Part shown: positions 8,976 through 44,594 of the stretch, in pieces
Layout: each line of letters begins with the position of its first letter
How positions within the stretch are numbered: position 1 is the first letter of the stretch
Assembly (NCBI GenBank): GCA_002269645.1
Contig: NIVC01000010.1
Coordinates: 1,674,001-1,738,000 of the forward strand
Origin: Macrostomum lignano
Taxonomy: Eukaryota
Length of the DNA stretch: 64,000 bases
Direction of reading: 5' to 3'
Translations under genes and position numbers: made by a program
Notes under the pieces: generated by a model
What the model was told of the DNA's origin: nothing
Database searches by the model: none
What the model saw: only the letters and a program-made list of their open reading frames with translations

Positions 8976-10294
8976 TCAGAATGACTCTACAACTCCAGCT
9001 CGCAGTGACCTCAGCCCACTGAGAATCCTTGATCGACAGGTGAAAAGCGCGACAAGCACGCTGGACAGCATCAGAATGACCACCAGAGCCGTCAGTGCTG
9101 AAATCGAAACACGGGGTGGTCACTGAGCCTGGCACAAACGTGCAAATTTTAAAGCCTCAGTCAGCAAAAAGATGCGCCCACCTGGAGACTCAACCAGCTG
9201 CTCACTCTGAGCAGAGCTCTGACCGCAGCTCGAGATGGAGAGCCGAGCCCTAAAGCCGGACCTCGCTCCGCTGTACGCGAGACTCATTCCGCTGTCCACC
9301 GCTTGCAGGCTGGCCTCAACGCGGAATTTGAACTGCGAGTTCGAGCCGCAGACCTCTCGCTGACTGCGCTCGACCGACGCTGCCAGAGAGTCCCAGTGAG
9401 ACGCAGTCAGCACGAGCTGCTTGAGTCCGCACACCGTACTGAACTTGTCCAGCTTCACTTCCAGCTTCCAGCAGCTGATGTTTGACACCGTGGAGATTTC
9501 AGTAGCAGTGCTTGCAACTTTGGTGCGGTTCGCGATTCGAGCAGCAGTGAAGGCATCCAGCTGCAGTTTGCAGTCAGTCTGAGTGTTGTCGGGAGCGACT
9601 GTCACAGTGGTGAGCAGCTCTGTACCGTCTGCGCTCAGCTGCCACTGCTCACTTGAGCTGTCGATTCGCGAGCAGACTTCAACTGTGTGAATGCAATTGG
9701 GTGTGAAAAGTTTTGACATTCATTTGTGCCTGTCATATTCTTACACTTTTATACATACTCTTAGCTGCAGTTTGAGACATCAGTGAAATGCACCTTGGTC
9801 CACGATGATTGACCCAACGATACTCTCTTCGGATTGGAAGCCGTGGAATTCGGCATTTGCTACTTCCGAGTCGTTTCTGTTGGCTCCTTCAGCACCAGTT
9901 GATGGATTTTCTGGCGACGCCGAGGTTACATCGACCGTCAGCGTTTCGCCTTCGCTCACTCGGAGCCTGTCCTGCAGTCGCAGTCGGCCAGGAATGTCGT
10001 GGTCGCAGATGCTGAGCTTCGTCTCCCTCTCTCTTTGAGGTGCAGAAATGATGAAGCTGAGCTTCGGGTGATGGAGCAGTGAGCTGATTTCATAGCAGAA
10101 TCGCTCCTGATAGTCATTGGAGGCGTGCATTTTCAGCTGAACAATCGGGTCATGGCCAGGTGGCGGAGTCATCCTTATTAAACAATAGTGCGAGAGCGAC
10201 AAACCAAAAATGGGCAATATTATTGGGCTGTACAGAACCAGCCGCGATTCCCAATGTTTCTGTGGAACATATCTATGGCAAAGGCGACTGAAAT
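8976..10294 (-). CDS. 3' fragment (last 3 exons) of a CUB-family type-I membrane protein paralogue, copy A; no upstream exons found
   Basis: Exons 10294-9794, 9682-9182 and 9097-8976 are open and phase-1 linked. The last exon encodes a TM helix (ALTALVVILMLSSVLVALFTC) and a short tail. Homologous to the last 3 exons of copies B and C. Confidence 0.7.
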
Positions 10295-10574
10295 CTGAAA
10301 AAAATGAAGGAATGAGGGTCAATGGGTAAACGATCCTTAGTGAACATTCACATTTAATATTAGGCACGCCACTTTAGGTCTGTGACATTTCCTAGTCAGG
10401 AAGTAATTCAAACATTGTTCTGGACATTTTTAAAGCTGTGCGATAAAATCCATCAAGAATCAATTTGCGATATGGCATCTGATACAGTTCTCTTTTTTCT
10501 TATCAATGGCTTCCAGTCACCTGAAAGTTCATCCCCGTCATCTCCTTTGTTGCAGAAATCCGTCTTACAAACAA

Positions 10575-15332: not shown

Positions 15333-18300
15333 CCCATCTCTATTCTCTCTACTCTCTCCCCTCTTCATTCTCCTATTCCTCTTCTCTCTTCCTGTCTCTC
15401 CTCTCTCCTCTAGTCTCTGTAATCTCTTCTCTCTTATCTCTCCTCTGTTCTCTCTACTCTCCCATCTCTCGTCTGTTCATCTGCTCTCTCATCTGTCATC
15501 TTTACTCTCTTATACGTTCTCTCACTTATCTCCTCTGTACTCTTCTCTTTCACCTCTTCTGACTCCTCTCTTTCCTTACTCCTTTCTTCTTTTCTCTTCC
15601 CTCTTCTCTATACTCTCTCTCTTCTATTATCTTCTCTCGTCTCTCTGCACTCTCCTTTCACCTTTTCTCTCATCTCTTCTTTGATCTGTCTCATCTCTAC
15701 AATCTCATCTCTTTCCTCTCTCCTCCTCTTCCCTTTACTCTCTCATCTCTCCTTTCTCCCCTCTTCTTTCACCACTCTCTTATCTCTATCTCTTCTCTTC
15801 TCACTCCTCTCCCCCTCTTATATCCTCTCTTCTCTATCCTTTCTACTCTCTCCTCTCTAATCTCTCCTCTCCTCTTGACCCTCTGTCATCTTCTTTCTGC
15901 TCTCTCATCTCTACTCTCTTCTCAATCTTCTCTACTCTCCTCTCTCATCGATCCTCTGTCTCATCTCTCCCCTCTTCTCACCTTTACTCTTTCCTCTCCT
16001 TCCTTTCTCCCCTCCTCTCGCTTCTTCCTCCCTTCTTCTCTGCTCTCTCCTCACCACTTTTCCTTTTCACTCTCATCTGGCCCGCAGCCATGAGCTGGAT
16101 TCTTTATCTGGCCTTTGAGATAAAATCTGCCAATCCCTGCTTCGAAAGTACTATCATGGTTGTTATCATTTCTCATGCTTTGATCACGTCATTTTTCTGG
16201 CCAATTAGCAGCCCTGAGAGGAATTTGTGTATCTCCATTCTCCAGCTCCACCACCACAGTCTGCAGCAGTCTAACAACCAAGGAAATACGCATTTCTTAG
16301 GAGGCCATTTAAATTTTAAAGTTACCTTATGCGAATCTTAATGTTAAAATTTTCATGGTGTAACTAATTTAGTAGGATTGCATTGTAATCAGTTATTCAT
16401 TAATTTTTCGCTATTTTTACAAACCATCCCACATCGCCTTGATTTACCATCCTTGTTTAACTGCTGCGACTTGTCTATACAGAGGACAGTAGTTTGAATC
16501 TCTCGCTAAACTCTCTCCTCTCCACGCCTCTCCACTCGCGGGGGTACAGAGACGGCTATTAAAAAGTTATTCCAAAACACTGTACATTTGCTATGTACAT
16601 TCAGTCCTATCGCCTGACCCTTCGTCTGGGCTGGGGGAATGAGTGAGTGAGTGGCACAAACAACAGAAAAAGCAGACAAACTTCACATGCTTACAGTTTC
16701 TTTTTCGGTTGAGTTACAGAGTTGAAACTTTACATTTAGACAGAGAATGGGTCAATGAAGAATTGTGTCAAGTTTGAAGTCAATCGCTTTACGTGGAGCA
16801 AACTTATGGCAGCTGAAAGTTAGTCAATTTTGAAACCCTTTTACACATCTGGGCCCAGATCGGGAAAGAGAGGCAGGCGGGCGGAGGTTGGGGTGGCTGC
16901 CTCGCTGAAAAAAAACAGCCTAAGTTTAAAAGTGCACAGCACCGCTCAGGATTAACTTTGAGATTTAAAATTTTACACGATTGTGTCAAAATAGTTGAAA
17001 ATTGATTGTGTCAAATTTGAAGAGGATCGGTAGAAGTGGAGCAGCGCTAAGGAGGCTTTAGTAAAAAAATCGCGCATTTTGAGCAGTTTTTTGCACTTTT
17101 AGGTAGGAAGACTCAAATTTAGGAAATTAAAAGGTAGCCTAAGACATTCTCCGTAGTAAGTTTAGGGTGGGTGCAAAGTTTGGTGTCATTTGGTTGAGCG
17201 GTTTGGGAGTCCATAGCGATCAAAATTGTCCACACACAGACAGACAGAGTTTTGATTTTTATAGGTAGAGATTAGAGATAAATGATACTAACGAAAATTT
17301 ATTGAAGAAATTATTGATCAATTTATAATTCCAGAAATCATAAAGGTGAAGGCATCTTTGGCCCAAATTAAGGGCCTGACGCATGACGCATGACATTTAT
17401 GACACAACATTCATGGCACATGACATTCATGACGCATGACATTCATGACGCATGACATTCATGACGCATGACATTCATGACGCATGACATTCATGGCGCA
17501 TGACATTCATGACGCATGACATTCATGACGCATGACATTCATGACACATAACATTCATGACATTTATGACACATGACATTCATGACACATAACATTCATG
17601 ACGCATGACATTCATGACGCATGAAATTCATGACGCATGACATTCATGACGCATGACATTCATGACGCATGACATCTATGACACATGACATTCATGACAC
17701 ATGACATTCATGACACATGACACTCATGACATTCATGACACATGACATTCATGACACACGCCATGACAAAAACCTACGATTTTGCAAACTATAGCCCTTC
17801 TAAACTACCTAGAACGACTCAAAGTCATAACCTCACCAATCTTCAGCCCTGCATGCCCGACCAGGTCGCCGAGAGGGTCTCTTGGGTAGCCCAGCCGAGC
17901 TGACAGACACGAGGCCGCATCGCTGCAGCATCCGTCAGGCAGGTCCGGAATCAGCGGGAGCACAGATTTACCCAGACCGCCGCGCACTCTGCGATGCTCA
18001 ACAATCGTTGAGCAGTGCTCAAGCCGGCCAAGTCGGCTCAGTAGCAGAGAGTAGGCGGCCTGACGCAGCGGCGCCGTGTCATCGAAGGTGCACGGGTTCG
18101 ATGGATCCTCGATGCCCACGGGCAGGTAGAGCTGGCCGTGCTGGGCCACGTCTAAGAATAGCGGCGACATGCGACCTGGGAGGGTTGGTTGGCTAGTTAG
18201 TTAGTTAGTTATTTAGTTAGCTAGTTAGTTAGTCAGTTAGTTAGTTAGTTAGTTAGTTAGTCAGTTATTCAGTTAGTTGGCTAGTTAGTCAGTATTTGCA

Positions 18301-18713
18301 CGCCCGCACCTTCGAGCAGTCCAGACTCCGTCAGCCATTGTGGAATACCCAGAGAGCTGTGGAAGCTCAGTTTGAGACCAGATTGAGACGCTGCAGCTGC
18401 TGCCGCGGCATTGGCGGGCGGTTCAACCAGAGCGAGAGCGGAATGCAGTTGGTAATGCGCCATGGACTCTCGCACAGAGGCCAGGAACCTGAGGAATATA
18501 GCAAACCTAAATTGTTAAAATAATATGCATCCAAGGCAGACAGACAGACAGGCAGACAGACAGACAGACAGGCAGACAGACAGACAGGCAGACAGACAGG
18601 CAGACAGACAGACAGACAGACGGACAGACAGGCAGACAGACAGGCAGACAGACAGACAGACAGAAAGACAGACAGACAGACAGAAAGACAGACAGACAGA
18701 CAGACAGACTCTA

Positions 18714-18749
<36 letters not shown>

Positions 18750-18777
18750 TCTAAGACAGACAGACAGACAGACTCTA

Positions 18778-18814
<37 letters not shown>

Positions 18815-18853
18815 GGCAGACAGGCAGACAGGCAGACAGACAGGCAGGCAGGC

Positions 18854-18886
<33 letters not shown>

Positions 18887-18937
18887 GTCAGACAGACAGA
18901 CAGGCAGACAGACAGACAGACAGGCAGACAGACTCTA

Positions 18938-18970
<33 letters not shown>

Positions 18971-19033
18971 GGCAGGCAGACAGACAGACAGACAGGCAGA
19001 CAGGCAGACAGACAGACAGGCAGACAGACTCTA

Positions 19034-19066
<33 letters not shown>

Positions 19067-22000
19067 GTCAGACAGACAGACAGGCAGACAGACATTCAGA
19101 CAGACAGACAGACAGACAGGCAGACAGACAGACAGACAGGCAGACAGGCAGACAGACAGACAGACAGGCAGACAGACAGACTCTAAGACAGACAGACAGA
19201 CAGACAGACAGACAGTCAGACAGACAGGCAGACAGGCAGACAGACAGACAGACAGGCAGACAGACAGACTCTAAGACAGACAGACAGACAGACAGACAGT
19301 CAGACAGACAGACAGACAGACAGACAGGCAGTCAGACAGACAGACAGACAGACAGGCAGTCAGACAGACAGACAGTCAGACAGACAGCTAAGTCTGGTCA
19401 TCACCTGTGCGCCCAACGCTTGTCCTCGGTCTGCAGGTCGTCACAGTCGCCGAGCAGCAGGCGCCGCAGCGCAGCCAGGCAGTCGTCGGGGCTCGCAAAG
19501 TTCCGGTGCGTCCAGACTAGCACGCCAGCGATAAGTCGGCGACTCTTGCTCTTCAGCTGCCTGCCGCCGCCTCCGCCGCTGCTACCCCCACCAGCGGATT
19601 TCGGCAGCTGAACTCGGGAGAGAATGCAGCGCCCCACGGCACCGCGGGACAAATAGTCGTTGCCGATCAGGGTGGCGCACAGGGGCAGCAGACTGGGGTT
19701 TACCTGACGGATTATGATTGAGTTGTTGGATTCAGACGGTTCAGATTGTCGTGGCATTTTGGGCGATTCTCATGGTGGTGTAGGGGCGATTCTCATGGGA
19801 GGTGAAGGGGCGATTCTCATGGGTTGTAAAGGGGCAATTCTAATGAGTTGTGAAGGGGAGATTCTCATGGGTTGTAAAGGGGAGATTCTCATGGGTTGTG
19901 AAGGGGCGATTCTCATGGATTGTGAAGGGGCGATTCTCATGGGTTGTGAAGGGGAGATTCTCATGGGTTGTGAAGGGGAGATTCTCATGGGTTGTGAAGG
20001 GGCGATTCTCATGGGTGGTAAAGGGGCGATTCTCATGGGTGGTGAAGGGGCGATTCTCATGGGTGGTGAAGGGGCGATTCTCATGGGTGGTGAAGGGGCG
20101 ATTCTAATGGGTTGTGAAGGGGAGCTTCTCATGGGTTGTGAAGGGCGATTCTCATGGGTTGTGAAGGGCGATTCTAATGGGTGGTGTAGGGGCGATTCTC
20201 ATGGGTTGTGAAGGGGCGATTCTCATGGGTAGTGAAGGGGCGATTCTCATGGGTGGTGAAGGGCGATTCTCATGGGTTGTGAAGGGCGATTCTCATGGGT
20301 TGTGAAGGGCGATTCTCATGGGTTGTGAAGGGCGATTCTCATGGGTGGTGTAGGGGCGATTCTCTTGGGTTGTGAAGTGCGATTCTCATGGGTGGTGTAG
20401 GGGCGATTCTCATGGGTTGTGAAGGGCGATTCTCATGGGTTGTAAAGGGGCGATTCTCATGGGTAGTGAAGGGGCGATTCTCATGGGTAGTGAAGGGGCG
20501 ATTCTCATGGGTTGTGAAGGGCGATTCTCATGGGTTGTAAAGGGGCGATTCTCATGGGTTGTGAAGGGGCGATTCTCATGGGTGGTGAAGGGGCGATTCT
20601 AATGAGTTGTGAAGGGGCGATTCTCATGGGTTGTGAAGGGGCGATTCTCATGGGTGGTGAAGGGGCGATTCTAATGAGTTGTGAAGGGGAGCTTCTCATG
20701 GGTTGTGAAGGGCGATTCTCATGGGTTGTGAAGGGCGATTCTCATGGGTGGTGTAGGGGCGATTCTCATGGGTTGTGAAGGGCGATTCTCATGGGTTGTA
20801 AAGGGGCGATTCTCATGACAATGATTAAATGCTTAAAAAACAAGTCAGTCAGTGAAAAAACAAACCACCTACCTTCCTCCGCAAAGCCGGCAGGTAGAAG
20901 TCCCTAACCCGGTAGATCTGACAGTCCAGAAACGGTGCGGGCTTCGCCTCATTTTCGTCCAATAAAGCTTTGGTGAGATGCAGAGTCTTGGTGAGCACCA
21001 CCCCGCCCGGCAGGTCGTAGATAAGAAAGTCGCTGTCGTTTGTGAGCACGGGGCAGCCCAGCTGAGCAGCCAGAGAGGCCAGGTGATTATCAGCATCGCC
21101 GAATGCACTCACAATTAAATTAAACTCGAACTCGTCAACCACCGTGCTACGGAAATAAAATAGGATATATGGAATTGGATCAATCTACATTAGAAATCCC
21201 AACCAGAATGGGATCAATCTACATTAGAAATTTCAACTAGAATGGGATCAATCTACATTAGAAATCCCAACCAGAATGGGATCAATCTACAATAGAAATC
21301 CCAACCAGAATGGGATCAATCTACAATAGAAATCCCAACCAGAATGGGATCAATCTACATTAGAAATCCCAACCAGAATGGGATCAATCTACATTAGAAA
21401 TCCCAACCAGAATGGGATCAATCTACATTAGAAATCCCAACCAGAATGGGATCAATCTACATTAGAAATCCCAACCAGAATGGGATCAATCTACATTAGA
21501 AATCCCAACCAGAATGGGATCAATCTACATTAGAAATCCCAACCAGAATGGGATCAATCTACATTAGAAATCCCAACCAGAATGGGATCAATCTACATTA
21601 GAAATCCCAACCAGAATGGGATCAATCTACATTAGAAATCCCAACCAGAATGGGATCAATCTACATTAGAAATCCCAACCAGAATGGGATCAATCTACAT
21701 TAGAAATCCCAACCAGAATGGGATCAATCTACATTAGAAATCCCAACCAGAATGGGATCAATCTACATTAGAAATCCCAACCAGAATGGGATCAATCTAA
21801 ATTAGAAATCCCAACCAGAATGGGATCAATCTACATTAGAAATCCCAACCAGAATGGGATCAATCTACATTAGAAATCCCAACCAGAATGGGATCAATCT
21901 ACATTAGAAATCCCTAACTAAATGGTGAGCGCATCACTCACCTGATGAACACTTCCATAGCCATGATTGGCAGCAGCCGATTGCTATTACCCCCAGCATT

Positions 22001-22749
22001 TTTAGCTTTGGCCCCGCCGCCCCCTCGGTCCAGCTGAACGCATTTCTTTACGCGCTTTTCAATTCGAGCTCGCTGTTCGCGCAGCTTCGGCCCAGACCAG
22101 TCCTTGGCCCCGTCTAGTACGAATAGCGGCGTGATGCCGCACTCCATCATGCTGGAGAATGCTCTCCGCAGCTCTCTGTAGCGGTGATAGCCAGTTTAAG
22201 TGGCTATACATAGTTAAACATCTAAATAATGTATATTCCTACAATTACTTAACATTTTAACATACTTTCACCTACCTACACTATCAAATAACTTAAGCTA
22301 GATCCTCATATCTAACTAGCTAATCCCCTTACCTAATTACCTCAGATCCTCATATCCAAATAGCTAATCCCTACCTAAATTACTTCAAATCCTCATATCT
22401 AACCAGCTAATCCCTACCTGGATTACCTCAAATTCTCATATCTAACCAGCTATTCCCTACCTGGATTACCTCAAATCCTCATATCTAATCAGCTAATCCC
22501 TACCTGGATTACCTCAAATCATCATATCTAACCAGCTAATATCTACCTATATATGTCATTGTCAGGGCAGATTTCTTACCTGACATACTGACCATATTCT
22601 CCAGCAAAAAGATATTCAATATTGTGCAGGTGATACAAATGATGTGCTAAATTGGAGGCATCAATCACTAGATAACAGTTGCGCAGCCGATGCCTATGCA
22701 AATTATTGCTATGCTGTAGCATATATGTTTGAAGACCTTGTACACCCAT
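13356..22749 (-). CDS. ASTE1: Asteroid homolog (XPG/FEN1-like PIN-domain nuclease), ~657 aa
   Basis: Exons 22749-22580, 22175-21942, 21146-20873, 19703-19405, 18488-18310, 18175-17837, 14277-14018, 13574-13356 total 1974 nt and are phase-consistent. Motifs: [20 protein letters not shown]; [11 protein letters not shown]; [24 protein letters not shown]; [12 protein letters not shown]; [17 protein letters not shown]; [13 protein letters not shown]; [10 protein letters not shown]. All match the Asteroid family layout. Confidence 0.92.
13625..13995. repeat. 33-bp minisatellite in ASTE1 intron 7
   Basis: CCCAATACCCAGGTATTCAGGCCCATCCATAGC-type units, about 10 copies. Confidence 0.9.
14575..16078. 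repeat. ~1.5 kb pyrimidine (CT)-rich low-complexity tract with a pure (CT)n core near 15248-15328, ASTE1 intron 6
   Basis: Almost only C and T on the + strand. Confidence 0.92.
16560..17278 (+). mobile_element. probable non-autonomous Helitron/Helentron-like element in ASTE1 intron 6
   Basis: It ends ...GTGTCATTTGGTTGAGCGGTTT..CACACACAGACAGACAGAG..TTTATAGGTAGAGAT, a terminal layout typical of microsatellite-bearing non-autonomous rolling-circle elements. The 5' boundary is uncertain. Confidence 0.4.
17378..17765. repeat. 16-bp minisatellite CATGACATTCATGACG in ASTE1 intron 6
   Basis: About 20 variant units. Confidence 0.9.
18192..18292. repeat. (TTAG)n microsatellite filling ASTE1 intron 5
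   Basis: Read directly from the sequence. Confidence 0.9.
18533..19388. repeat. (AGAC/AGGC)n microsatellite with periodic TCTA interruptions, ASTE1 intron 4
   Basis: Read directly from the sequence. Confidence 0.92.
19750..20816. repeat. 23/24-bp minisatellite GGGGCGATTCTCATGGGTTGTGAA, ASTE1 intron 3
   Basis: About 44 units. The 1-bp shorter variants shift the frame of the spurious ORFs. Confidence 0.92.
21175..21915. repeat. 34-bp near-perfect minisatellite AATCCCAACCAGAATGGGATCAATCTACATTAGA, ASTE1 intron 2
   Basis: About 21 head-to-tail units with no spacers. Confidence 0.93.
22300..22548. repeat. ~43-bp minisatellite ATCCTCATATCTAACCAGCTAATCCCTACCTGGATTACCTCAA, ASTE1 intron 1
   Basis: About 6 variant units. 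Confidence 0.85.
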
Positions 22750-27885: not shown

Positions 27886-30709
27886 GCCAAGATCTAAAGG
27901 AACTGGTGGCAGCACTACCTACACTACTAAGAGCTAATAGAAGGCTTCTAGTTAAGAAGCCAGAGAGCCCAAATCACTGTGCTAGGAGAAGCATAGGTAC
28001 AATGTTAGCCATTCTATGTTTTACTTTGGGAATCAGATTTTCAGAGTAACCTATTTGTTAAATTTTTGGCATGCATAGGGAATTTGGTGACATGCTCAAA
28101 ATCTAAAAATTCTGGGATGTTGTGAATTGAAGCTATTTTATAAGATTGGAAATAGTGATATTCTATATGGATATGGCAAGATTTGTCTAGTAATCACATT
28201 TATTCAGATTTAGACTTTCAAATATGAAATAAAAATTTATAATTAAATTTATTCCAGCCTGTATCTGTTAACCTACTTTGCTATGATGCCAACAATTTGT
28301 GCTAGAAAACACTCCATCTAAAATAAAAAGCTAATAGTTGTTTGCATGACTAGAAGCTATGGCAGACCAAAGAAAACTGTGGTAACCAGCTCCTCAACAG
28401 TACAAGCAGTTGCTCTGGGTGCTAGTGTAAATAAATAAACTCTAGCGTCGATTTTGAGGTTCCATTCTTTCTAAGCCAGCTTAACAGTAATGCTATCATT
28501 GAAAATTAGCCTAATTTTGTTAAATGGGAAGACTATGCATCAATTGTCAAAGATTATTATACTGACTGCTATAAACAATCCTTTGTCTTAGGCTGTTGTA
28601 TCTGTTGCGGCATTGAGCCTAGTGTTTTCCGGTGTGTTACCTGTCAACTTGATCTATGTAGTGGTTGCCATGACATAACACATGGAGAATTTGCACCTTA
28701 AAAATATCTCTTATGGAATGTAAGTTGCTCTAAACTTATAATTATAAGCTACTATCCCTATTGAATGTACTAGTTTTCATTTTATTAGCATATTGTCATT
28801 TTTATTTAAGGTAATTATTTTTTAATATCAATTGGAATTGTTCAATAAGATTCCAGACAAGGAAAATCTTATTGTCCTATTTGGATTAGAAAACATAATT
28901 CAAAAGACTGCAACTCTGTAATTATAAATAGGTCTAAACAAAATTAAATAAAGCAATACTCAACTATTTATAAAATTTATAAAATTTTAGGTTTAATATC
29001 TTTCAAGATTTGCAAAGTAATTTTCTATTTAAAAATAGAATAGCTATCACTAAAAGGGTATTTTTCTTGTCACCAAAATGACTTTTGCTTGTCACTGAAA
29101 GGACTGTCACCAAAACGACTATAATCCTACACTTAGGAAAGTGTAAACTATGGTGGAAAATTCTAGGCACATTAACATAAGTCACTGAAATGTATAATCT
29201 GCATATACAATGCCTAAAAGATGCTTTTAGGTTATGTTTTTTTCTAAACATATCAATTAAAAAATTGTTTCTTAGTAAGTGAAATAAATAAAAAAATTCA
29301 ATGTGGGATTTTCATTTTATTGTAAAGTTTAGGCCTAAGCTAGGGCCTAATTCTATTGACAATTTTCTACATGAGCTAAAAAAATTACAAAGTTTTGAGT
29401 TGAAAAAAGCCTTCAAAAAGTACAAAAATTTATCCATTTTTTGTTTTTGTTTTAGTTGGACTTTTACTTTGAGTTTTTTTAATACTAGGCTACGGCACAT
29501 TAGTACTCTAGCTATGTATTGGTCAATAAATGAATGTAGGCCTTGGCACACAAATTTATATTTTAGCTTTGCACATAGTGCACACTCCAAAAATATGTTA
29601 GAATATATTCCCAAACACACGCACACATGATACCTTCCTGAGTGTGGCTGTAATCTAGTGCAAATGCCATAGTAACTTATCTAGATAAGCTTGAAATATT
29701 TTATGATAAGGTTTGCACTGTAGCTTAGAAATAGGCCTATCAGATTAGGCCTATTAACCATAGGCCTAGAACCAAACCGCTTACTTAGGCTGACCATATA
29801 AACTTCTACTTAATTACTTACATTTACATGCCTTAGTTAGAATCACAGAATGTCAGTTAGGAAAAATATAATTTCAAAATATTTTTCATTAACATTATAG
29901 GCATGTAATTTAAAGAAAATTTCTAAATAATTTATTAAAATTTAACAAACAAAAGGGAATATATGCTTATCATGTCATGCTAACTTTAGATTGGCCAGTT
30001 AGCCTCAGGAGGAACACTATTAGTAGAAACTCTTGGCTTTCCTACCATGACACAATTGCCAGACTACATAGGCCTAGTAATAGTAATAGCAATAGAATAA
30101 ACTTGCATCCTGAACTGATGCCTGGCCCTGGCTACAGTGGATTGGATTGGATCCCTATATTTTTTAATATAACTGCTGCCGCCCGGCTGTACGCCAGTAG
30201 TAGTAGTAGTAGTAAATTGGCTCAGGCAAGAAGCCTGTTTGGCCAATATATTTCTGTGTATTTAATATTACTTCAGGAATAGGAGACAGTATTTTAGCAT
30301 TAGTTATTTAATTACGATTACACTTAGTACGAGTTTTGCAATATGTAAAGTATTTTTATGTATCAATTAAATCTCCGCACTTTTTATGATGTGTCCGGCA
30401 TTCTTGAATATTATTTAGTTAGTATTTATTCAGTAGTGAGTTTCTATTTCCGCGATTCTTACTGTACGTACTTTACTACTATTGTTTTACTGTATGCTAA
30501 TTCCTATCGTATTTCAAACGCGAATGCGCTGTGTTTTGGTGTTAGTTCTCCTGTGCGCCGTAGTAGTTGTAGTTGTAGGGTTGCATAGCCGTTCCAGAGT
30601 TCCAGGCGATCCAGTTTTAATTCAATAATAGATATAGACATTATTTAGAAAATTCTTAATTACCTTGACTATACATAGATTGTTCAGATACGAATACAAA
30701 TATATAAAT

Positions 30710-33577
30710 CAGGGTTTTTTTTTTGTGCGCAGAGTGTGCGTATGCACCCTAAATTTTAAAATCGCACCCTGAAATTAAAAAAGTAGGTGCGGTTTAGGTG
30801 CGGTCTTATAACCATTTTTCTTTAAAGGCTTAACCATGCTTAAGCTATTTTTTATGCACTGCCTTAAAATATGAAACAAAATAACTCTTTAAATCCTATT
30901 AAGTCATATAGGCGATATAGCCTATAGCTATAGCCTTATGTAAGATATTAAAATATACATTCCCAGTTGTCTGAAATGTGAGCAATGTGAGGGTTTCACG
31001 AGAGATATTCAGACAAAGGCTCCCTAAAACACGCCCCGCACCGGGCCCCGAACTGCTCCACATTATAACATTTTTTGTCAATGCAGTATTTGATTGCAAG
31101 GAAAAGTTAAAATAGTAATGGAATAAATATCTTTATTTATTTTTTTAAATATTTTTATTTTTTATATTCTCGTTTTCATTATTTAATTATAATATTATTA
31201 TTTTATTAATATTATTATTAATATCACTTATTGTTCACCGAATTTTATATTTCAAAGTAAAAAAACTAAATTTAATAAAAACTTGAAGCTTAACAGAAAA
31301 CGCATTCTGAAGTGTCTTTAGTTATAGTCCAATTTGTTTTAATGTGTAGCGCTGCAGGGCGGTGCGGGGCGTGTTTTAGGGAGACCCATTCAGACAGACA
31401 TTCAAAATGATTGTCTGTAACTTCAAACAAAATTGACCTGCTTCAACCATCTTTTTGGCAAATACTTACGCAAGTGTTGGGCGTCGAATAAGCTTTAATT
31501 TATTAACTGAAGTAAAAATCCTTCTGACATACATTGATTTAAAAATTGCTTAGCAACACTAGCTCTGATTAGAAATCGCTTTACTGTTGACTAAAATTGT
31601 TTTGATCGTAGCAGCCTAAAAGCAGATACTGGATTTAAAAATGCTTCGATTTACTCTATACGCATGTCTCGGCTTTGAAATGACACCTCAGGTGTCGCAA
31701 AAGACAGCTTTGATGCTGAGATATTCGACACTAAACATGCATTGCTTTGCGCAATCTCACATTCAGAAATTTCACTGATTTTTTTGTCGATATTTGTGCA
31801 GTTGCCATGTCCTTGTTTTTCATCAGAATCTTGTCAAATTCTAGTCATGTCTATACGCATGTCTCAGCTTTAAAATGACACCTCAGGCATTGCAAAGGAC
31901 AGCTTTGATGCTGAGATATTCGACACTAAACGTTGCTTTGCTCAAACTCACATTCGGAAACTTCACTGATTTTTATTCAATATTTGTTCAGATGCTTGTC
32001 TACTTCTCCATTTATTAACCATCGCATGGAGCCTTGCTAACGTACAAGTGTATGTAGTTACAGTAAATGGGGTTTTTGTGACTCACTTAAACTTGTTTAC
32101 GCATTCTGCAGCTATTCGCCGCCTTTCATTGGAGTGATTCATGGAGTCCAGTTGATAAATTTCCACAAATTGGACTGCTTCTACGTCAGATCTCAACATT
32201 TGGAACCGTCCTTGAACTATTTCAGAGTTAAGTGAGCTAATGGCATCAAATGGAAGGCTAGTGCTCGTACTTGTAAGCGAAGCAGGTTCACAATTGAAAT
32301 GGTTGTATTCATGGCCATGGGATCTAAACTGATCTGTTTTACTTTCACGATCGCTTTGGTCTCAGAAGGAGCAGCAGTTGATGGACTGAGGTGAGAAGAA
32401 GATGTGTCACGACTTGAGCTGTTTTTAGAAAATATCTTTATCCAATTAAATATTTTCATGCGGCTCCTTAGGTTGTTCCGAATTCCGAGTCTAGAAGTCA
32501 AGACAGAAAAAAAGTTAAGAACTGCTACTGTAGTCCGTAGGGATTGGAAAGCTTAGCAGTACATTAGAAATCGCCAGTTCAATCTAAAAAGTTTGAAGTA
32601 CATATAGCTATTGGGTTGCAACAACAGTAGAAAAAATTCTTCTTTTTATTTTATTCCCACCGCTTACCTCATTCCGATTTGGATAGCAGAATTGCCACGC
32701 AAAAAAAGTAAAAACATAACAATAAACTATTTGCTTCATATTAATTGCCACTGACTGTTAATAAACGCGACGTCAATTTCTCTCAATAACAGTTGGAACA
32801 TGTTTCTCGTACACTCGTATATTTATTTGAACCACAAAGCAGTGAAAAAGTCATGATTGGTTGCCATATGTACAAATGTACACTCACAGACTCATTGACT
32901 CAGGTACAATCTATGCAATATAAAGGCAGGAATCATTAAAAATCAAATACTTAAGACAGTTTAAGAGAAGTCCAGGTTTAAACTGGACATGACTAGAATT
33001 TGACAAGTTTCTGATGAAAAACAAGGACACGGCAACTGCACAAATGTCGACAAAAAATCGGTGAAATTTCTGAATGTGAGATTGCGCAAAGCAATGCATG
33101 TTTAGTGTCGAATATCTCAGCATCAAAGCTGTCTTTTGCGACGCCTGAGGTGTCATTTTAAAGCTGAGACATGCGTATGGAGTAAATCGAAGCATTTTTA
33201 AATCCAGTATCTGCTTTTAGGCTGCTACAATCAAAACAATTTTAGTCAACACTAAAGCGATTTCTAATCAGAGCTAGTGTTGCTAAGCAATTTTTAAATC
33301 AATGTATGTCAGAAGGATTTTTACTTCAGTTAATAAATTAAAGCTTATTCGACGCCCAACACTTGCGTAAGTATTTGCCAAAAAGATGGTTGAAGCGGGT
33401 CAATTTTGTTTAAAGTTACAGACGATCGTTTCGAATGTCTGTCTGAATATCTCTCGTGAAACCCTCACATTCTAAACAAGACTCAAGAGAAATTGCACTC
33501 TGAGCCTTAAAATCGCACCTTGAAATTTGGCACAAGGTGCGATTTCGCACCTTATCTCTGGCGAAAAAAAAACCCAG
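30710..33577. mobile_element. non-autonomous TIR DNA transposon (hAT/P-like ends) with ~0.5-kb internal inverted arms
   Basis: Ends CAGGGTTTTTTTTT..GCAGAG and its inverted counterpart ..CTCTGGCGAAAAAAAAACCCAG. TATAAAT is duplicated at 30703-30709 and 33578-33584. Arms ~30984-31851 and ~32986-33472 are inverted copies. No transposase ORF. Confidence 0.88.
31016..31387. mobile_element. MITE with 9-bp TSD (Mutator-like) nested in the left arm of the DNA transposon
   Basis: TIR CTCCCTAAAACACGCCCCGCACC and its inverse. ATTCAGACA at 31007-31015 and 31388-31396. Absent from the otherwise matching right arm. Confidence 0.85.
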
Positions 33578-33711
33578 TATAAATGAAATGAATTAAGGCG
33601 CATTGCATCCACAAGCCAAGAACGCATTCGGCATTCGTTCATTCATCTGTCATCACAACGAAAATAAGGCGATTCTTTGAATTCTTGGACTTCAAGAAAC
33701 TTATTTTACAT

Positions 33712-33722
33712 TGGCGACCACG
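33712..33722 (+). promoter_or_regulatory. primer binding site TGGCGACCACG (tRNA-Arg type)
   Basis: One nucleotide after the LTR end. Complementary to a tRNA 3' end ...CGTGGTCGCCA; the isoacceptor assignment is from memory of tRNA-Arg(TCG). Confidence 0.8.
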
Positions 33723-34109
33723 CCAGCAAAGAAACGCTGGATCTGCACATTTACGGCCAAGTCAATTATACTCATTAGTGCCTATTCTACTCTGCCTACT
33801 GCCTACTGTCTATGCCTAATGGATTATAAAGACAATTGACAATATTTTTGGTCAGCTATTTTCAATAATATCAATCTGCTTATTGAAGAACTGATATTCA
33901 TTTGGACCTAATTGCTATTATAAATTAATTATCTTGTTTGACTAGTTCTCATTGAAATTTAGTCCTATCAACATATTATTATTAAATGTCAACAAATAAG
34001 ACCTTTGGCATTAGCATCAAAGAATTATATTATTAACTATTCAAAGACTTCTTGAGACCAATAAGGACCTATCAGTATCATCATCATCAATTGATTAATT
34101 GCTGCCAAA

Positions 34110-35339
34110 ATGCCACCAAAGAAAGTAGTGCCTACAGGCAAATTAACAAAGACAAAAAGTGCTTCAAATACTAGCAAACCAAAGACAAGGTCTACTACTA
34201 AAAACAAGGCAAATAGTCAGCAAGTGCCATTATCATCAGTTGCTACTGAACACTTGTGTCCATCTAAAAGTGCTAATAACAGTGCTCAGCCAATCAAATC
34301 CGAGGTTGAAGCTCCTAAAATAGTAACTCAAACAAACCAAGAATGTGATTCAATTTCTGTTACAAATCCGGTAGACTATTCAAGGCCTAATCAATATCCA
34401 ATTAACTCTTTACCAGTTGCTAGTCATCTTTTGCAACCTATTGAATCTAAGTACCAAGCTATGCAAATTCAATTGTCGCCAATTCCAAAGCCAATGCCAT
34501 TTAATGGAAAAGAAAATTTTGCGGATTTCCTATGCCGGATTGAAAGCTACATCAGTAGGTTTTCAAATTTAACTGAAGCAATTAAAATTCAAACTTTATC
34601 AGCATTCTTAGGATCAGCATTTTGTACTTATCGCTCGTGGCTCTCAACTATTTATGTAACGCATGGTGTGCCTGTCAACACTCTATTAGAAAATATTCCA
34701 AATGTCACTTTCTTGGAATGCACAGAATTTCTCCGAGGCCGCCATGGTGAGAAAAGCAATGTTGTTCTACGCCGTGAACTTAGAAATCTATCTAGGAGAC
34801 CAACAGAGACATTTGAGCAATTTCTTACTGCTTTACAAAACCTGGCTATCCAGGCCTACCCAGATGCAATTGCTACTGAAGTTGTGCAAACTATGATCTT
34901 AGATCAGTTCATAACTGGCATCAATGACCTCAAGGTCATGGAGCATCTATCAAATCTCACCAACTTGGAGACAGCAGAACAGGCCTTGCAGATTGCACAA
35001 CAAGTCCGTGAGACACAGCAACTCTTGGCAAAAGCACCAGTGAGTAGTCAGCAAATCTCCTTAGTACAACCAGAAAGCCATCAAAACAAGCAATCGTTAC
35101 CACCGAAAAGTAACCAGCCACAACCAAAGTATCATCAGCAGCAAAAATCTACGCAGAACCAACCAAAGTCCAATCAGCCAGCAAATAACAACTTTCAGCA
35201 ACAACAGAAATATCCTAATCAGCAAGCAAGGTACCAACAGGTCACTTGCTTTAGATGTGGCCAACTTGGACATGTGCAAAGAGTGTGCCCAAACTTGATG
35301 CAGGCTGGATCAGGGGCCAGACCCCAGCCTCATCATTGA
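34110..35339 (+). CDS. gag: Gypsy Gag with CCHC zinc knuckle
   Basis: 409-aa ORF with PMPFNGKENFADFLCRIE capsid-like region, LDQFITGI and CFRCGQLGHVQRVCP. Confidence 0.92.
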   Translation: MPPKKVVPTGKLTKTKSASNTSKPKTRSTTKNKANSQQVPLSSVATEHLCPSKSANNSAQPIKSEVEAPKIVTQTNQECDSISVTNPVDYSRPNQYPINSLPVASHLLQPIESKYQAMQIQLSPIPKPMPFNGKENFADFLCRIESYISRFSNLTEAIKIQTLSAFLGSAFCTYRSWLSTIYVTHGVPVNTLLENIPNVTFLECTEFLRGRHGEKSNVVLRRELRNLSRRPTETFEQFLTALQNLAIQAYPDAIATEVVQTMILDQFITGINDLKVMEHLSNLTNLETAEQALQIAQQVRETQQLLAKAPVSSQQISLVQPESHQNKQSLPPKSNQPQPKYHQQQKSTQNQPKSNQPANNNFQQQQKYPNQQARYQQVTCFRCGQLGHVQRVCPNLMQAGSGARPQPHH

Positions 35340-38300
35340 GTGGCCCAATTCTGAGGAGAAAGACCAAGTGCCAGAACCAGTAACTGTAAATGTAAACTGT
35401 ATGTCAACTAATGTTATGTATGTTTCTACTAAATTCTTTGGCAAAAATATTCCATGTCTAATAGATACCGGTGCTTCAGCTACAATCATAAATTCAAGTT
35501 TAATTAACAAATCAAAGTACCAAGTAAGAGCTTCTAATGTCAAATTACAAGCTGCAAATGGTAAACAGCTTTCTGTATTAGGAGAAATGACAATCAAATT
35601 TAATTTTGGAGATATTGTCTGTCAGCAAGAAGTCATCATCTGCAAAGACATTCAGCATTCAGTCATCCTAGGATGTGATTTCTTTACTAATTTCAATGTA
35701 TCTATCCATCCAGCAGAAGGCATGATCACATTTAATAATCAGAACAGAAGTTTCCCAACTAGAAAAACAACAGAAGTTCAGAGAAGCTGCAAGATCATCG
35801 CAACTGAAACTGTCCAGCTTAAACCAGGACAAGCAGCAACTATTTCCATTGCACCAAAGATGTCAACTCAGTCAATGGCACCAGGACTAGTCCAGTCGAA
35901 CAAAAGAATCCCAGGACTCTTGGCTGCTAGAACTGTTGATTTAATAAAGAATGAAGGCATGTACATCAATATTATCAACTCGAACTCGAACAGAGACTTA
36001 ACCATCAAGAAAGGTTCGTTAGTTGGTTCCTTCACCCCTCTAGATTGCAGAGGAGAGACCTGCATTGTCGTCGAAGAAGTAGCAGATAAATCCGAGTCTG
36101 GTAGCAAAGAAGAGACTGAAGATGCAGAGAAAACATTCAAAATTTCTCCAGATCTCACAGAAGCTGAAAGGAAATCTGTTAGTGACATCCTAGATGAGTA
36201 CAGCGACATATTTTCAAGAGATGGCAAGCTTGGTCGAACTGCTTTACTGAAACACTCGATAAATACTGGCACAGCAATGCCTGTCAGAGAGACATTAAGG
36301 AGAGCAGCACTGCCAACCATCAAGGAGCAGGAGAAGTTGATTCAACAAATGCTTGATGATAAAGTCATTCAGCCGTCAACATCACCGTGGGCTGCACCTG
36401 TCATTCTGGTGAAAAAGAAGGACGGAAGCTCTCGTTTTTGCATTGATTTCAGAAAACTGAATGCTGCAACTAAACCTGATGCATTCCCTGTGCCAAGAAT
36501 CGACGACATGCTAGATGCTTTAGCAGATAACGTTTACTTTTCTGCATTAGACTTGCAAGCAGGCTACTGGCAAGTAGAAATGGAAGAAAAAGATCGCGAG
36601 AAAACCGCATTTGTCTGTCACCATGGACTCTTTGAATTTAATGTTATGCCCTTTGGCTTACGCAATGCACCATCAACTTTTCAAAGACTCATTCAGATGG
36701 TCATTCAAGGCTTAAATTGGGAAGCATGCTTAGCTTACATCGATGATGTTATTGTTATGGGTAAAACGTTAGATATTCACAACGAGAGACTCAAACAAGT
36801 TTTTGAACGATTAAGAGCAGCAAATCTTCGCCTTAAACCTAGTAAGTGCAATTTTGCTGCCAAGTCGCTTAAGATCTTAGGTCATGTGATAACGCCTCAA
36901 GGAATAGCAGTAGACGATGAGAAGATTGATTCTATTAAGAGATGGCCAACACCAACGAATCAGAAAGATGTTAGAAGTTTTCTAGGCCTGTCATCATATT
37001 ACAGACGATTCATTAAAGACTATTCAAAGATTTCCGAGCCCTTAAGAGTGCTGACAACTGATAAGAAATTTACCTGGACCGACGAGGCAGAGCAAAGTTT
37101 CATTCGCCTTAAGTCCGCCTTAACATCGGCACCTATCTTAGCATTGCCAATAATGACAGGCGAAGACTCCGAATTTGTTCTAGATACTGATGCTAGCGAC
37201 TTTGCCATAGGATGCGTTTTATCACAGCAACAGAATGGCGAAGAAAAAGTGATTGCCTATGGAAGTCGAGTGCTCAGCACCGCCGAAAAGAATTACTGCG
37301 TGACTCGCCGAGAACTACTAGCAGTAGTCGAGTTTGTTAAAAAGTTTAGGTCATATCTAGCGCCAAAGAAGTTTACAATCAGGGTAGATCACCAGGCGTT
37401 GACCTACTTACTACAGTTCAAAGAACCTAATGGCCAATTAGCTCGATGGATCGAATCTCTTCAGGAGTTTAACTTCGAGATACTCTACCGGCCAGGTAAA
37501 CTGCATTCCAACGCAGACGCTTTATCACGCAGGTGTACAAGACCGTGCGAATCTTGTCGACCTAGCAAAGCAATTTCAGATGCAGAATGTCAAACTGACG
37601 AAGATCAGACTGTCGCAGCTGTTTTGTCTAGAAGGAAACAAACGCTGGTTCCAAGGAAATCCGAAAGCGAGGACGAAAGTGAGTTAATAGACGAAGCTGA
37701 GCAGAGTGAGACTGAAGAGGAGCCGAGTATGCGTGCACTGCAGTTACAGGATCCAGGAATTGGACCAGTATTTCGGAAGCTAGCCAATGGAAAAACAGCG
37801 TTTGAAACTGGAGAACGAGATAGAATGTCACCAGAAAGTTTGAGCCGCCTTATGTCCAAAGCCGACGAATTGTGCTTCGTTAACGGTGTAATGCATTATT
37901 TATTCAAGACTAAGCCTGTTCTAGTACTGCCGCAGTGTAAACGAGAAAGCTTCATTAAAGAAATTCATGAGTTAGGTCACTTTAGTGTCGAAAAGACAAG
38001 AACATCTGTCAAGAAGCGTGCCTACTGGCCAAAATTAGCCCTGGATGTTGAACTATTTGTCAGGTCATGCATTCCGTGTCAAAGATCTAGGCCAACATCA
38101 ATCACTCGAGGCCCTCTGCAGCCGATAGCTACAGGATTTCCTATGCATCGCATTGGAATCGACATAGTAAAAGTGGCTACCTCGAGGCAAGGCAATAATC
38201 GATTGCTTACGATAGTCGACTACTTCACTAAGTGGGCCGAATTAATACCAATTCCTGACGAACGAGCGAACACCGTTGCGAAGGCAATATTCGACGTGTG

Positions 38301-39090
38301 GATATCGAGATGGGGAGCACCGCATATCATTCACTCCGATCGGGGTAGCAACGTGGACGGCAAAGTCATCAAGAGTCTCTGCAAAATATTTGACATTCAA
38401 AAAACTCGCACTACCTATTTCCATCCTCAGTGTGACGGTCTTGTAGAAAGATTCCATAGAACATTGCATAGCGTGCTACGATGCTACCTGCAAACGGTGG
38501 AACCCGAAGACTGGCAAGATGTTATTCCTCATTGCCTTCTGGCCTATCGAAGCACCGTCCACAGCAGCACCGGCTTTACGCCTCATTTCCTGATGACTGG
38601 GCGAGAAGTTACGCTTCCTCTTGATATTGTATATCGACTGGCTGAACCGGCCAGCACTGCTGTAACTTTCGCCAGCTCCACAAAAGAGTCTCTACTGAAA
38701 GCATTTGAAGCTGTGAGAGAGTCTGTTGATTTAGCACAGCGCCGCCAGAAGAGATATTATGATAGAAAGTCCAAGAAAAAAGGGTTCAAGGTTGGATCAT
38801 TGGTCTGGATTTTTATCCCACCATCTGTCCTACGGCAGCGTGAACCTCGCTGGTCTGTCAAACACCACGCTCCATGGACTGGACCTTTCCGTGTCACCCG
38901 GAAGTTGACCAGCCTGACCTATGAAGTGAAGTCGATTGACGAACATCAGAAAGTAAAGATCGTAAATGTAGAGAAGATGAAACGCTACATTGAGCCGCGT
39001 AGACAACAAGGGTTGTGGCAAGACGAAGAGGCTGACGAAAGAGAACAAGAACCAGAAGAAAGCGTCGAAGAGGAATGGGTCATTGTGTAG
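35299..39090 (+). CDS. pol: Gypsy Pol (protease, RT, RNase H, integrase); frame open from 35299
   Basis: LIDTGA (PR); SPWAAPVILVKKKDG..FCIDFRKLN and YIDDV (RT); LDTDASD (RH); H-H-C-C, GIDIV..IHSDRG..VERFHRTL (IN); C-terminal GPF-like motif. Confidence 0.96.
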   Translation, partial: CRLDQGPDPSLIIEWPNSEEKDQVPEPVTVNVNCMSTNVMYVSTKFFGKNIPCLIDTGASATIINSSLINKSKYQVRASNVKLQAANGKQLSVLGEMTIKFNFGDIVCQQEVIICKDIQHSVILGCDFFTNFNVSIHPAEGMITFNNQNRSFPTRKTTEVQRSCKIIATETVQLKPGQAATISIAPKMSTQSMAPGLVQSNKRIPGLLAARTVDLIKNEGMYINIINSNSNRDLTIKKGSLVGSFTPLDCRGETCIVVEEVADKSESGSKEETEDAEKTFKISPDLTEAERKSVSDILDEYSDIFSRDGKLGRTALLKHSINTGTAMPVRETLRRAALPTIKEQEKLIQQMLDDKVIQPSTSPWAAPVILVKKKDGSSRFCIDFRKLNAATKPDAFPVPRIDDMLDALADNVYFSALDLQAGYWQVEMEEKDREKTAFVCHHGLFEFNVMPFGLRNAPSTFQRLIQMVIQGLNWEACLAYIDDVIVMGKTLDIHNERLKQVFERLRAANLRLKPSKCNFAAKSLKILGHVITPQGIAVDDEKIDSIKRWPTPTNQKDVRSFLGLSSYYRRFIKDYSKISEPLRVLTTDKKFTWTDEAEQSFIRLKSALTSAPILALPIMTGEDSEFVLDTDASDFAIGCVLSQQQNGEEKVIAYGSRVLSTAEKNYCVTRRELLAVVEFVKKFRSYLAPKKFTIRVDHQALTYLLQFKEPNGQLARWIESLQEFNFEILYRPGKLHSNADALSRRCTRPCESCRPSKAISDAECQTDEDQTVAAVLSRRKQTLVPRKSESEDESELIDEAEQSETEEEPSMRALQLQDPGIGPVFRKLANGKTAFETGERDRMSPESLSRLMSKADELCFVNGVMHYLFKTKPVLVLPQCKRESFIKEIHELGHFSVEKTRTSVKKRAYWPKLALDVELFVRSCIPCQRSRPTSITRGPLQPIATGFPMHRIGIDIVKVATSRQGNNRLLTIVDYFTKWAELIPIPDERANTVAKAIFDVWISRWGAPHIIHSDRGSNVDGKVIKSLCKIFDIQKTRTTYFHPQCDGLVERFHRTLHSVLRCYLQTVEPEDWQDVIPHCLLAYRSTVHSSTGFTPHFLMTGREVTLPLDIVYRLAEPASTAVTFASSTKESLLKAFEAVRESVDLAQRRQKRYYDRKSKKKGFKVGSLVWIFIPPSVLRQREPRWSVKHHAPWTGPFRVTRKLTSLTYEVKSIDEHQKVKIVNVEKMKRYIEPRRQQGLWQDEEADEREQEPEESVEEEWVIV

Positions 39091-40468
39091 AACCGACTGT
39101 CATTAAGAAACAGATCTCGCGCGTAATTGCACCAATCACTACTTTGTGGCCACTTCATGGTGAATTCCTGGAACTAATCATGGTTAATCTACTAATAACT
39201 ATTGGATTTGATTTGATTGGATTGGATTTGATCCGTTGGACTAACTAGAACTATCATCTGATTATGATGGACTACTGGTAACTGGACTGACTAATTACTG
39301 TCTGATGGACTACTGGTAACTGGACTGACTAATTACTGCTTGATGGACTGACGGATAACTACCTAAGGGACTGATGGACTACTACACTTAACTACCGTGC
39401 AATAATTGTGCTGGAGACAGACTGTGAGCATTTTAACACTGATATTAATAAAGCCATGCTAAACACTATTAGATTCGCAACTTGATTCAAATACTGACTG
39501 GTTGTTTCCTAATAATGCAATTTTCGTATTTGGTAAATAGTAAATTTTGCGTGTTATTACACTGTTCCTATTGTTCAATTGCAGGGTGCTCGATTGCTTG
39601 AATTTTTTTTGCTTCGCGCATTTGTGAAATCGTTTTATCCGTCGAACTTTTAGTTGTTCATATTTTTTCAAAAAAAATACAGAAATATTATTTTGTTATT
39701 GCATTTTAATTTTCCCCAATATTGTGACAAAACATTAAAAAAATATCTGTTGCATATGCTTTCGCTATCGAATTGTTGTCGCGGAGGTGTACTGTAATTT
39801 TCGATCGTTCACGTCTTTCTGCAACTGTAATGGTCTGAAACTGTTATTTCGTTCGAAACATTCATCATTTCATTGTTCGTAATTTAGGCATAATTTAAGT
39901 CGTTGACAAGTACCGTAATAATTTGCTTCTCTTAAACATTTCATCTGTCAGTATTAGAATTTTGTCGTCTGTGCATTCGTTTCGGCGTTCTGTTGCATAC
40001 GTTCGAATTGATGTTCTCGTGACAGTTTCGGTTTGTTGTGCTATCATGCATAATCATCAGCTTTAATACATTTTTTGAAGTGGTTTAAAGTTTTTCCTGC
40101 TCTTTTTGCCGGCATTCTTGTTGTGCAAATCGATGTTCAGAATCAACGCTCGCGCCGTGTCCAATGTACCTCTGCTTTCCGTGCGGTCGTGCTGGTGGCT
40201 CTGTCAGTAAGATTATAACTGTATTAGTATTGCAAGCATGGCGACCTTGCGTCTCTAGGAATTTTTTTTCTTCCTTCAGGGTACACTCGGTATGCATGTC
40301 TCCTCAACTTTTAATGTAAAATTATCACTGTTTTTCTGTACCCACTTTCATACCGTACGAGTATTAGCGACAAAGCACATCGAAATTTTCAATGTTCTAC
40401 TGACGCAGATTTTTGAAGTAGTATGTATAGAGTTTTCTTAACGGTAACAATGAGGGCATTGTTTTTCT

Positions 40469-40478: not shown

Positions 40479-40481
40479 TAA

Positions 40482-44558: not shown

Positions 44559-44594
44559 TGATCTCCAAAACTGATTTGCGCACCTGCGCGTGGA

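Follow-up and report, generated by a model that had tools for sequence, protein, structure and literature searches.

Two inverted gene fragments in the genome of the flatworm Macrostomum lignano, here termed copies A and B, are nearly identical over 1067 nucleotides (nt) and strongly diverged on both sides of this tract. They lie 33 kb apart in a 64,000-nt stretch of contig NIVC01000010.1 (assembly Mlig_3_7, GCA_002269645.1), hereafter the window, in which a position plus 1,674,000 gives the position on the contig. Both are remnants of a Macrostomum-specific family of CUB-domain proteins, and the tract sits in the last three coding exons of the family: a variable exon 1, a highly conserved exon 2, and a last exon in which a transmembrane (TM) helix and a short tail precede the stop codon. 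Very probably, the tract originated by non-allelic, intrachromosomal, non-crossover gene conversion between these two inverted, non-functional remnants. The copies, their neighbors and the parts of the tract are listed in Table 1.

Alignment of positions 9096-10162 (minus strand) with positions 43357-44423 (plus strand) yielded 1067 ungapped nt with 7 mismatches (99.34% identity) at tract offsets 15, 223, 271, 672, 878, 889, and 897; all seven are substitutions and none is an insertion or deletion (indel). The pair was returned by the repeat finder as inverted repeat I1, the longest inverted repeat of the window, with a spacer of 33,194 nt between its arms. At a flank mismatch rate of 0.40, the log10 probability of finding 7 or fewer mismatches in 1067 nt is -220, and a hypergeometric test over the 1310 aligned sites gives P = 7e-70. 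Chance is therefore excluded as the source of the identity. The tract includes two introns with GT..AG ends, of which intron 1 (111 nt) is identical between A and B at 111/111 positions and intron 2 (84 nt) is likewise identical (82/82 on slightly different coordinates); neither can be aligned to the introns of gene C, an intact member of the family further along the window. All seven differences fall in exons, an outcome with a chance probability of about 0.25. At the 5' edge, the base directly outside the tract (43356 in B, 10163 in A) is mismatched, and identity rises from 14/33 nt outside to 49/50 nt inside; the edge coincides with the start of a conserved PGHD-coding motif. The 3' edge lies 2 nt inside the last exon, at the same point as a 24-nt deletion, flanked by a CA dinucleotide, that only A carries. 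The first-pass annotation of the window had described a tract of about 99% identity with about seven substitutions, an abrupt 5' boundary within an exon and an end 2 nt into the TM exon, all of which were recovered here, and the diverged 5'-flank peptides that it quoted, DFSRLCHRYVPQKHWESRLVLYSP for A and DLDPVCPRYTKERHWEMQLFLYSP for B, are correct.

The sequence outside the tract marks A and B as old paralogues: synonymous divergence (dS) in the flank is about 1.3. In the 5' flank, A and positions 43224-43356 of B share 72 of 133 nt (54%), and the two are mutual best non-self matches in the window in exact register (tblastn E-value 6e-7); dS is saturated at 1.33, and nonsynonymous divergence (dN) is 0.58. 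In the remainder of the last exon, 74 of 110 nt are identical (67%), and A and B are again mutual best non-self matches in register (E-value 5e-9). Within the tract, dS is 0.008-0.024. Beyond the exon ends the two copies are unalignable (26/100 and 21/100 in-register matches), as expected for ancient paralogues. A near-identical tract is thus embedded in homologous but far more diverged flanks. The earlier proposal that the flanks are paralogous, and the tract not a fresh duplication, holds in that both flanks are significantly homologous and in register. Its broader wording, recent gene conversion or non-allelic homologous recombination (NAHR) between old paralogues, can be narrowed: conversion is supported by the flank E-values, by dS and by the switch in tree topology described below, whereas a simple NAHR crossover is contradicted by the retention of each copy's own flanks on both sides.

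Homeologous copies of B provide an outgroup for the tract. Annotated relatives of gene C led to two such loci, each on a further contig of Mlig_3_7: locus L002 (NIVC01001549.1), which is 96-97% identical to the window and carries B', and locus L003 (NIVC01000199.1), which is 88-92% identical and carries B''. Their existence agrees with the description of three homeologous subgenomes in the DV1 line (PMC10733133). The retrieved homeologous contigs stop short of the A side, and a homologue search with the OCRL-like exon adjoining A, aimed at the A side of other subgenome contigs, returned no matches. Copies A and B differ at 7/1067 sites in the tract, 61/133 in the 5' flank and 36/110 in the last-exon flank, and the corresponding counts are 29/1067, 61/133, and 37/110 for A and B', and 28/1067, 0/133, and 5/132 for B and B'. 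Copies B and B'' differ at 73/963 tract sites and at 10/132 sites in the last-exon flank, the 5' flank having no counterpart in B''. Within the tract, A and B agree against B' at 25 sites, B and B' agree against A at 4, and A and B' agree against B at 3. When B'' is used as the outgroup, 11 derived tract sites are common to A and B and none to any other pairing. The tree inside the tract is therefore ((A,B),B'),B'', while outside the tract it is ((B,B'),B'') with A as a remote outgroup. Paralogues thus group together inside and homeologues outside, and this switch at both boundaries is the defining signature of interlocus gene conversion. Flanking markers were not exchanged, as sequence of A type lies on both sides of A and sequence of B type on both sides of B. 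That each copy kept its own flanks on both sides argues against a simple crossover and for a non-crossover event or an equivalent double exchange. Polarization with B' assigns 4 of the 7 A/B differences to A and 3 to B as derived, a split that two real loci diverging since the event would show. From these distances, the A/B event postdates the split of B and B' and lies at roughly a quarter of the B-B' divergence (0.66% versus 2.6%).

The same comparisons bear on the direction of transfer. B and B' diverge by 2.6% within the tract and by 1.3-3.6% outside it; for B and B'' the value is 7.6% both within the tract and in the flanks. Such uniformity across the boundaries would be expected of a B that had escaped overwriting, which makes a single transfer from B to A most parsimonious. 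Copy B accordingly looks vertically inherited and may have been an unchanged donor, with B to A being the most parsimonious, rather than a proven, direction. It should be noted that exon 2 of A, B, and B' also carries a 63-nt patch (9471-9533 in A, 43986-44048 in B, and 6819-6881 of L002 in B') that encodes ANRTKVASTATEISTVSNISC. This haplotype is restricted to these three copies and differs at 27-33 of its 63 nt from B'', from genes C and D of the window, and from a further fragment, E, located just beyond the window. No donor of the haplotype was found in any retrieved locus, and the patch may hint at a trace of older traffic.

A sequence of events that would account for these observations begins after divergence of the three subgenome copies, with a break or stalled fork in one copy, most parsimoniously A. 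Repair would have been templated by the other copy, 33 kb away and inverted, such that 1067 nt including both introns were overwritten while the flanks remained unexchanged, that is, with a non-crossover outcome. The homology for strand invasion was probably supplied by the core of exon 2, which appears to be kept alike by recurrent exchange (see below); the flanks are far too diverged for strand invasion. The 5' end of the tract would have been resolved at the short conserved motif that encodes PGHD. At the 3' end, either a pre-existing heterology halted the tract or the junction was sealed through microhomology, in which case A would be the repaired copy. The 24-nt segment concerned occupies 44424-44447 or 44422-44445 in B, a placement made ambiguous by the CA dinucleotide; B', B'', C, and D all possess its 8 codons as well, so that the gap is specific to A. 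Since the event, 4 private substitutions would have accumulated in A and 3 in B.

Several points weigh against this account. At 54-67% identity, the flanks are too dissimilar for ordinary homologous recombination to have begun or stopped within them, and one canonical double-strand-break repair poorly explains a tract that extends on both sides of the exon 2 core. To account for the reach of the tract, two events, a (replication) template switch or repeated homogenization may be needed. If A and B had been homogenized before the split of B and B', the same numbers could result from either direction of the last exchange. Three of the 7 differences are clustered within 20 nt (P about 0.03), and both junctions, as read from the sequence, would stand or fall with a single Canu/PacBio assembly. 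A patch from one third donor was considered for the three clustered differences and rejected, since 2 are B-derived and 1 is A-derived. A rival scenario is one in which A and B have been homogenized in both directions since before the subgenome split, such that 0.66% dates the latest round alone and the edges of the tract mark where the flanks have long escaped. The reticulate exon 2 core of nine copies examined, the low identity of the flanks for a first-time event, and the 63-nt patch present in A, B, and B' but not B'', which could reflect an older transfer from A to the B lineage, all speak for this scenario. It nevertheless requires more events than one B-to-A transfer, and the colinearity of B, B', and B'', with similar divergence in tract and flank, fits a B that was never overwritten. 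Long-standing homogenization is thus a possible but doubtful account of the data.

The remaining explanations fare worse. An assembly or polishing artifact, in which B reads entered the consensus of A or the reverse and the tract is single in the genome, has some footing in the nature of the assembly: Mlig_3_7 is a Canu assembly of PacBio reads to which Pilon polishing with Illumina and RNA-seq data was applied, it holds 180 Mb of blocks that are at least 95% identical, and it is difficult and redundant, with polishing reads that map to multiple places (PMC5730564). The restriction of all 7 differences to exons points the same way. Yet a 1-kb identical block is beyond what polishing could make of exons about 55% identical and introns that cannot be aligned, the differences consist of 7 substitutions and no indels split 4:3 between A-derived and B-derived, the tract is far below the size of a PacBio read and lies inside a 2.39-Mb contig, and both junctions are in frame and in register. 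An artifact is accordingly regarded as highly improbable, although a few of the 7 differences may have been changed during polishing. Exact-protein look-ups of the junction-spanning open reading frames (ORFs) of A and B, of P0001 and of the ORF at 7278-8042 returned no record, and no independent assembly of the junctions was found. A fresh partial duplication of B into an unrelated site, or the product of an NAHR crossover or inversion, would be compatible with inverted arms 33 kb apart on one contig and with a 24-nt deletion with CA microhomology at one junction. Duplication was rejected on flank homology: the flanks of A are significantly homologous to the family in exact register, and the site was already occupied by a paralogue. 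A single crossover was rejected because it predicts one switch point per copy and swapped flanks, whereas A has two switch points and the flanks are its own. Together these origins are barely credible. Finally, purifying selection could be thought to keep the copies identical without any transfer, given that the protein sequence of exon 2 is highly conserved in all members. It is virtually inconceivable as the cause and was rejected on the identical introns and low dS, as the introns are 100% identical between A and B and unalignable to those of C, and dS is 0.01-0.02 in the tract versus 1.3 adjoining it. In addition, B evolves neutrally (dN/dS 0.94), and the core of exon 2 persists in E and B'', which are dead fragments.

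Conversion between A and B is set within a wider exchange that involves exon 2 across the family. All nine copies examined share 92-97% identity in the core of this exon (nt 214-504), and the core of gene C (56010-56307) is 95% identical to A and B. Between A and C, dS is 0.078 in exon 2 codons 72-168 versus about 1.9 in exon 1 (Fisher P 2e-15), and GC content at third codon positions (GC3) is 0.66-0.74 in exon 2 versus 0.44-0.56 in the other exons. Distances in the core are reticulate, in that C', the L002 copy of gene C, differs from D at 8/291 sites and from C at 14/291 (compared at window positions 55800-56303, L002 18504-19007, and L001 16669-17172). The exon 2 core of C' was also seen to carry D-type patches (HMQ and SLQAEGSG), and the same mosaic is present in UniProt entry A0A1I8HCJ6; this mosaic points to conversion between functional paralogues that differs among subgenome copies. 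The dead fragments E and B'' retain the core as well, and since it is kept even in these, selection is not the cause. Judged from these alignments, exon 2 would be a conversion hotspot of the whole family, with functional and dead copies involved. Exon 2 also holds an antisense ORF that is open in all copies and spans 110-131 codons across the core of A (9153-9482, plus strand), B (44037-44366, minus strand), and C (55998-56390, minus strand); it probably results from the high identity and from codons rich in CAG/CTG. In multigene families such as the major histocompatibility complex (MHC), opsins and immunoglobulin V segments, single exons or domains evolve in concert through mosaic short-patch conversion. 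The likeness here lies in an exon 2 core that is 92-97% identical, reticulate, raised in GC3 and low in dS next to saturated neighbors; the difference is that there is no sign of programmed or somatic use.

The family to which A and B belong is represented in the window by two annotated genes, C and D, which, like the full-length protein P0002, combine Pfam CUB domains with the C-terminal module and a TM helix. With several CUB domains, a TM helix and a short tail, C and D resemble CUB-domain single-pass membrane proteins; the module that bears the tract differs in lying outside any Pfam family. A Pfam search of the 374-residue module gave no family match, and among 1.8 billion representative proteins it is represented by only two clusters, both from M. 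lignano, suggesting that this juxtamembrane module (roughly 335 residues) looks lineage-specific. An AlphaFold2 model built on a 4-sequence alignment of the module had a mean predicted local distance difference test (pLDDT) score of 38, with the TM helix alone confident, and is unusable. Relatives in M. lignano are named "Cubilin" or "CUB domain-containing protein" in UniProt, where "Cubilin" is an automatic label and not a tested orthology. A search of Rfam over 8800-10500 produced sub-threshold chance matches only.

Copies A and B keep only the exons of the module and the TM helix, with B additionally retaining a CUB remnant of 26-38 residues. Copy A is the three-exon module alone, no upstream exons being detectable within 7.5 kb by tblastn of P0002. 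Copy B heads the tandem array B-C-D, lacks the counterparts of P0002 residues 1-124 and 163-742, and has no gene annotated in the GenBank record. The B-B' comparison gives a dN/dS of 0.94, by which B is evolving neutrally, and B'' is frameshifted. Both A and B thus appear to be dead, non-functional remnants, in keeping with the first-pass description of B as a pseudogene (it is truncated, unannotated and has a dN/dS of 0.94) and of A as an orphan fragment without upstream exons. At the other end of the array, fragment E (L001 18813-19443, about 68.9-69.5 kb in window numbering) is an inverted orphan placed tail-to-tail with gene D. It consists of the 3' two-thirds of exon 2, whose core is 95-96% identical to the other copies, and a degenerate TM-like exon, and its flanks are unalignable. 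Because E is inverted beyond D, the array is bracketed by inverted dead fragments, A and E, at both ends.

Table 1. Coordinates of copies A and B, of the near-identical tract and of other features in the window.
Feature	Position	Strand	Description
Copy A, rest of last exon	8976..9095	-	TM helix, short tail and stop codon; translation ALTALVVILMLSSVLVALFTCRSRILSGLRSLRAGVVESF, followed by the stop
Copy A, tract arm	9096..10162	-	3' 369 nt of exon 1, intron 1, exon 2, intron 2 and 2 nt of last exon
Intron 2 of A	9098..9181	-	Same as B 44338-44421
Intron 1 of A	9683..9793	-	Same as B 43726-43836
Copy A, diverged 5' part of exon 1	10163..10295	-	45 codons, open frame
ASTE1-like gene, exons	17808..22195	-	Between A and B; Pfam XPG_I_2 at 20852-21184 and 17808-18200
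Gypsy-type long terminal repeat (LTR) retrotransposon	30344..40973	+	Between A and B; relative-age marker
Copy B, upstream remnants	42452..43081	+	Match P0002 residues 125-162 and 743-900 (tblastn)
Copy B, diverged 5' part of exon 1	43224..43356	+	133/133 identical to B', 72/133 to A
Copy B, tract arm	43357..44423	+	More parsimonious donor; colinear with B' (L002) and B'' (L003)
Copy B, rest of last exon	44424..44558	+	Holds the 24 nt missing from A
Gene C	47402..56601	+	Intact annotated member PAA94477.1, 1324 aa; CUB domains followed, at about 55220-56601, by the C-terminal module of three exons
Gene D	60070..64000	+	Annotated member, 975 aa; continues past window end

The spacer between A and B had been said to hold ASTE1 and a Gypsy element, and a gene with XPG_I_2 domains and a young LTR element were indeed found there. 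The 493-nt LTRs of the latter differ at 1 position, and its ORF at 35368-39090 encodes protease, reverse transcriptase, RNase H, and integrase (Pfam). The element is probably framed by a 4-bp AATA target duplication, and its 5' LTR is interrupted at 30709/33578 by an insertion of 2.87 kb that has a target duplication of 7 bp, TATAAAT. Two segments of about 464 nt inside this insertion (31388-31851 and 32986-33448) form an inverted pair. Directly beside the 5' end of A lies a GC-rich, retroelement-like ORF with a SAP domain (10787-11395, plus strand), of which L003 contains a distant relative (27% identity, E-value 5e-7) followed by a reverse-transcriptase ORF. This arrangement suggests that the SAP ORF represents ORF1 of a retroelement, and its insertion may be the site at which A lost its upstream exons. 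Just downstream of A, and on the same strand, is an OCRL-like gene (4172-8042, minus strand) with ASH and RhoGAP domains in the ORF at 4172-5302; a 254-aa ORF at 7278-8042 starts about 0.9 kb from the stop codon of A. Long tandem arrays occur at 12.7-21.9 kb, 41.8-42.2 kb, 44541-44925, and 45156-45846, with periods of 8-12, 16, 18, 24, 28, 33, and 34 nt. Of these, two arrays of 18-mers immediately follow B. Array copy number varies among the subgenome copies, and such arrays are typical of a repeat-rich genome. An isolated inverted match of 76% links L003 24352-24787, downstream of the L003 copy of gene C (C''), with window positions 29177-29647, just upstream of the Gypsy element; it is probably a common repeat fragment, with a rearrangement as the remaining alternative.

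Two further roles had been envisaged for the pair, as part of a reservoir of silent sequence for the receptor family and as the arms of an inversion. The donor of the A/B event would indeed be a silent copy, B being truncated, unannotated and with a dN/dS of 0.94. The putative recipient, however, is not a functional, expressed gene: A is an orphan fragment, and the intact genes C and D lie outside the tract. The reservoir idea therefore gains no support from the A/B event, in which both partners are non-functional, even though exchange in exon 2 spans live and dead copies. Regarding inversion, arms of 1067 nt at 99.3% identity around a spacer of 33,194 nt form a high-identity inverted repeat whose geometry allows a 33-kb flip. 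The inner flanks are not swapped, each arm having its own flanks on both sides in the assembled orientation. A combined scenario, in which silent fragments regularly donate patches to C and D in a mosaic-diversifying receptor family and the A/B pair is the basis of a 33-kb inversion that segregates and relocates ASTE1 together with the region upstream of the array, is considered improbable.

In humans, interlocus conversion links genes with neighboring pseudogenes or paralogues at, for example, CYP21A1P/CYP21A2, GBAP1/GBA, and RHD/RHCE. The A/B pair resembles these in that a short near-identical tract (hundreds of bp to a few kb) lies in diverged paralogous sequence, in that the transfer, most parsimoniously non-reciprocal, left the flanks unexchanged, and in that the partners are within tens of kb on one chromosome. 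It differs in that both partners are non-functional and inverted and in that the flanks are far more diverged (dS about 1.3). The palindromes of the human Y chromosome and X-linked inverted repeats such as those of the FLNA-EMD region undergo arm-to-arm conversion, and their spacers also flip. Like these, A and B are inverted on one chromosome, exceed 99% identity by intrachromosomal conversion, and have sharp arm edges and a spacer that is invertible in principle. In contrast, the arms of A and B are about 1 kb rather than 10 kb to Mb in length, and the sequence beyond them is old but homologous; unlike that of the FLNA-EMD repeats, the spacer between A and B is known in the assembled orientation alone. 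No relevant report of gene conversion in M. lignano emerged from a search of the literature.

The A/B conversion is a fresh instance of a well-known process and involves no new mechanism. No functional effect of it is visible, and no phenotype is expected because both partners appear dead. What it does offer is a natural case of ectopic gene conversion that is very clean and whose boundaries are legible to the nucleotide. The three subgenome copies of a neopolyploid flatworm serve as built-in outgroups, which allows the event to be dated to after the subgenome split. For M. lignano, this means that kilobase-scale identity between paralogues in a repeat-rich genome need not signify recent duplication or assembly redundancy, a point of relevance to annotation, to the design of knock-outs and to the dating of duplicates.

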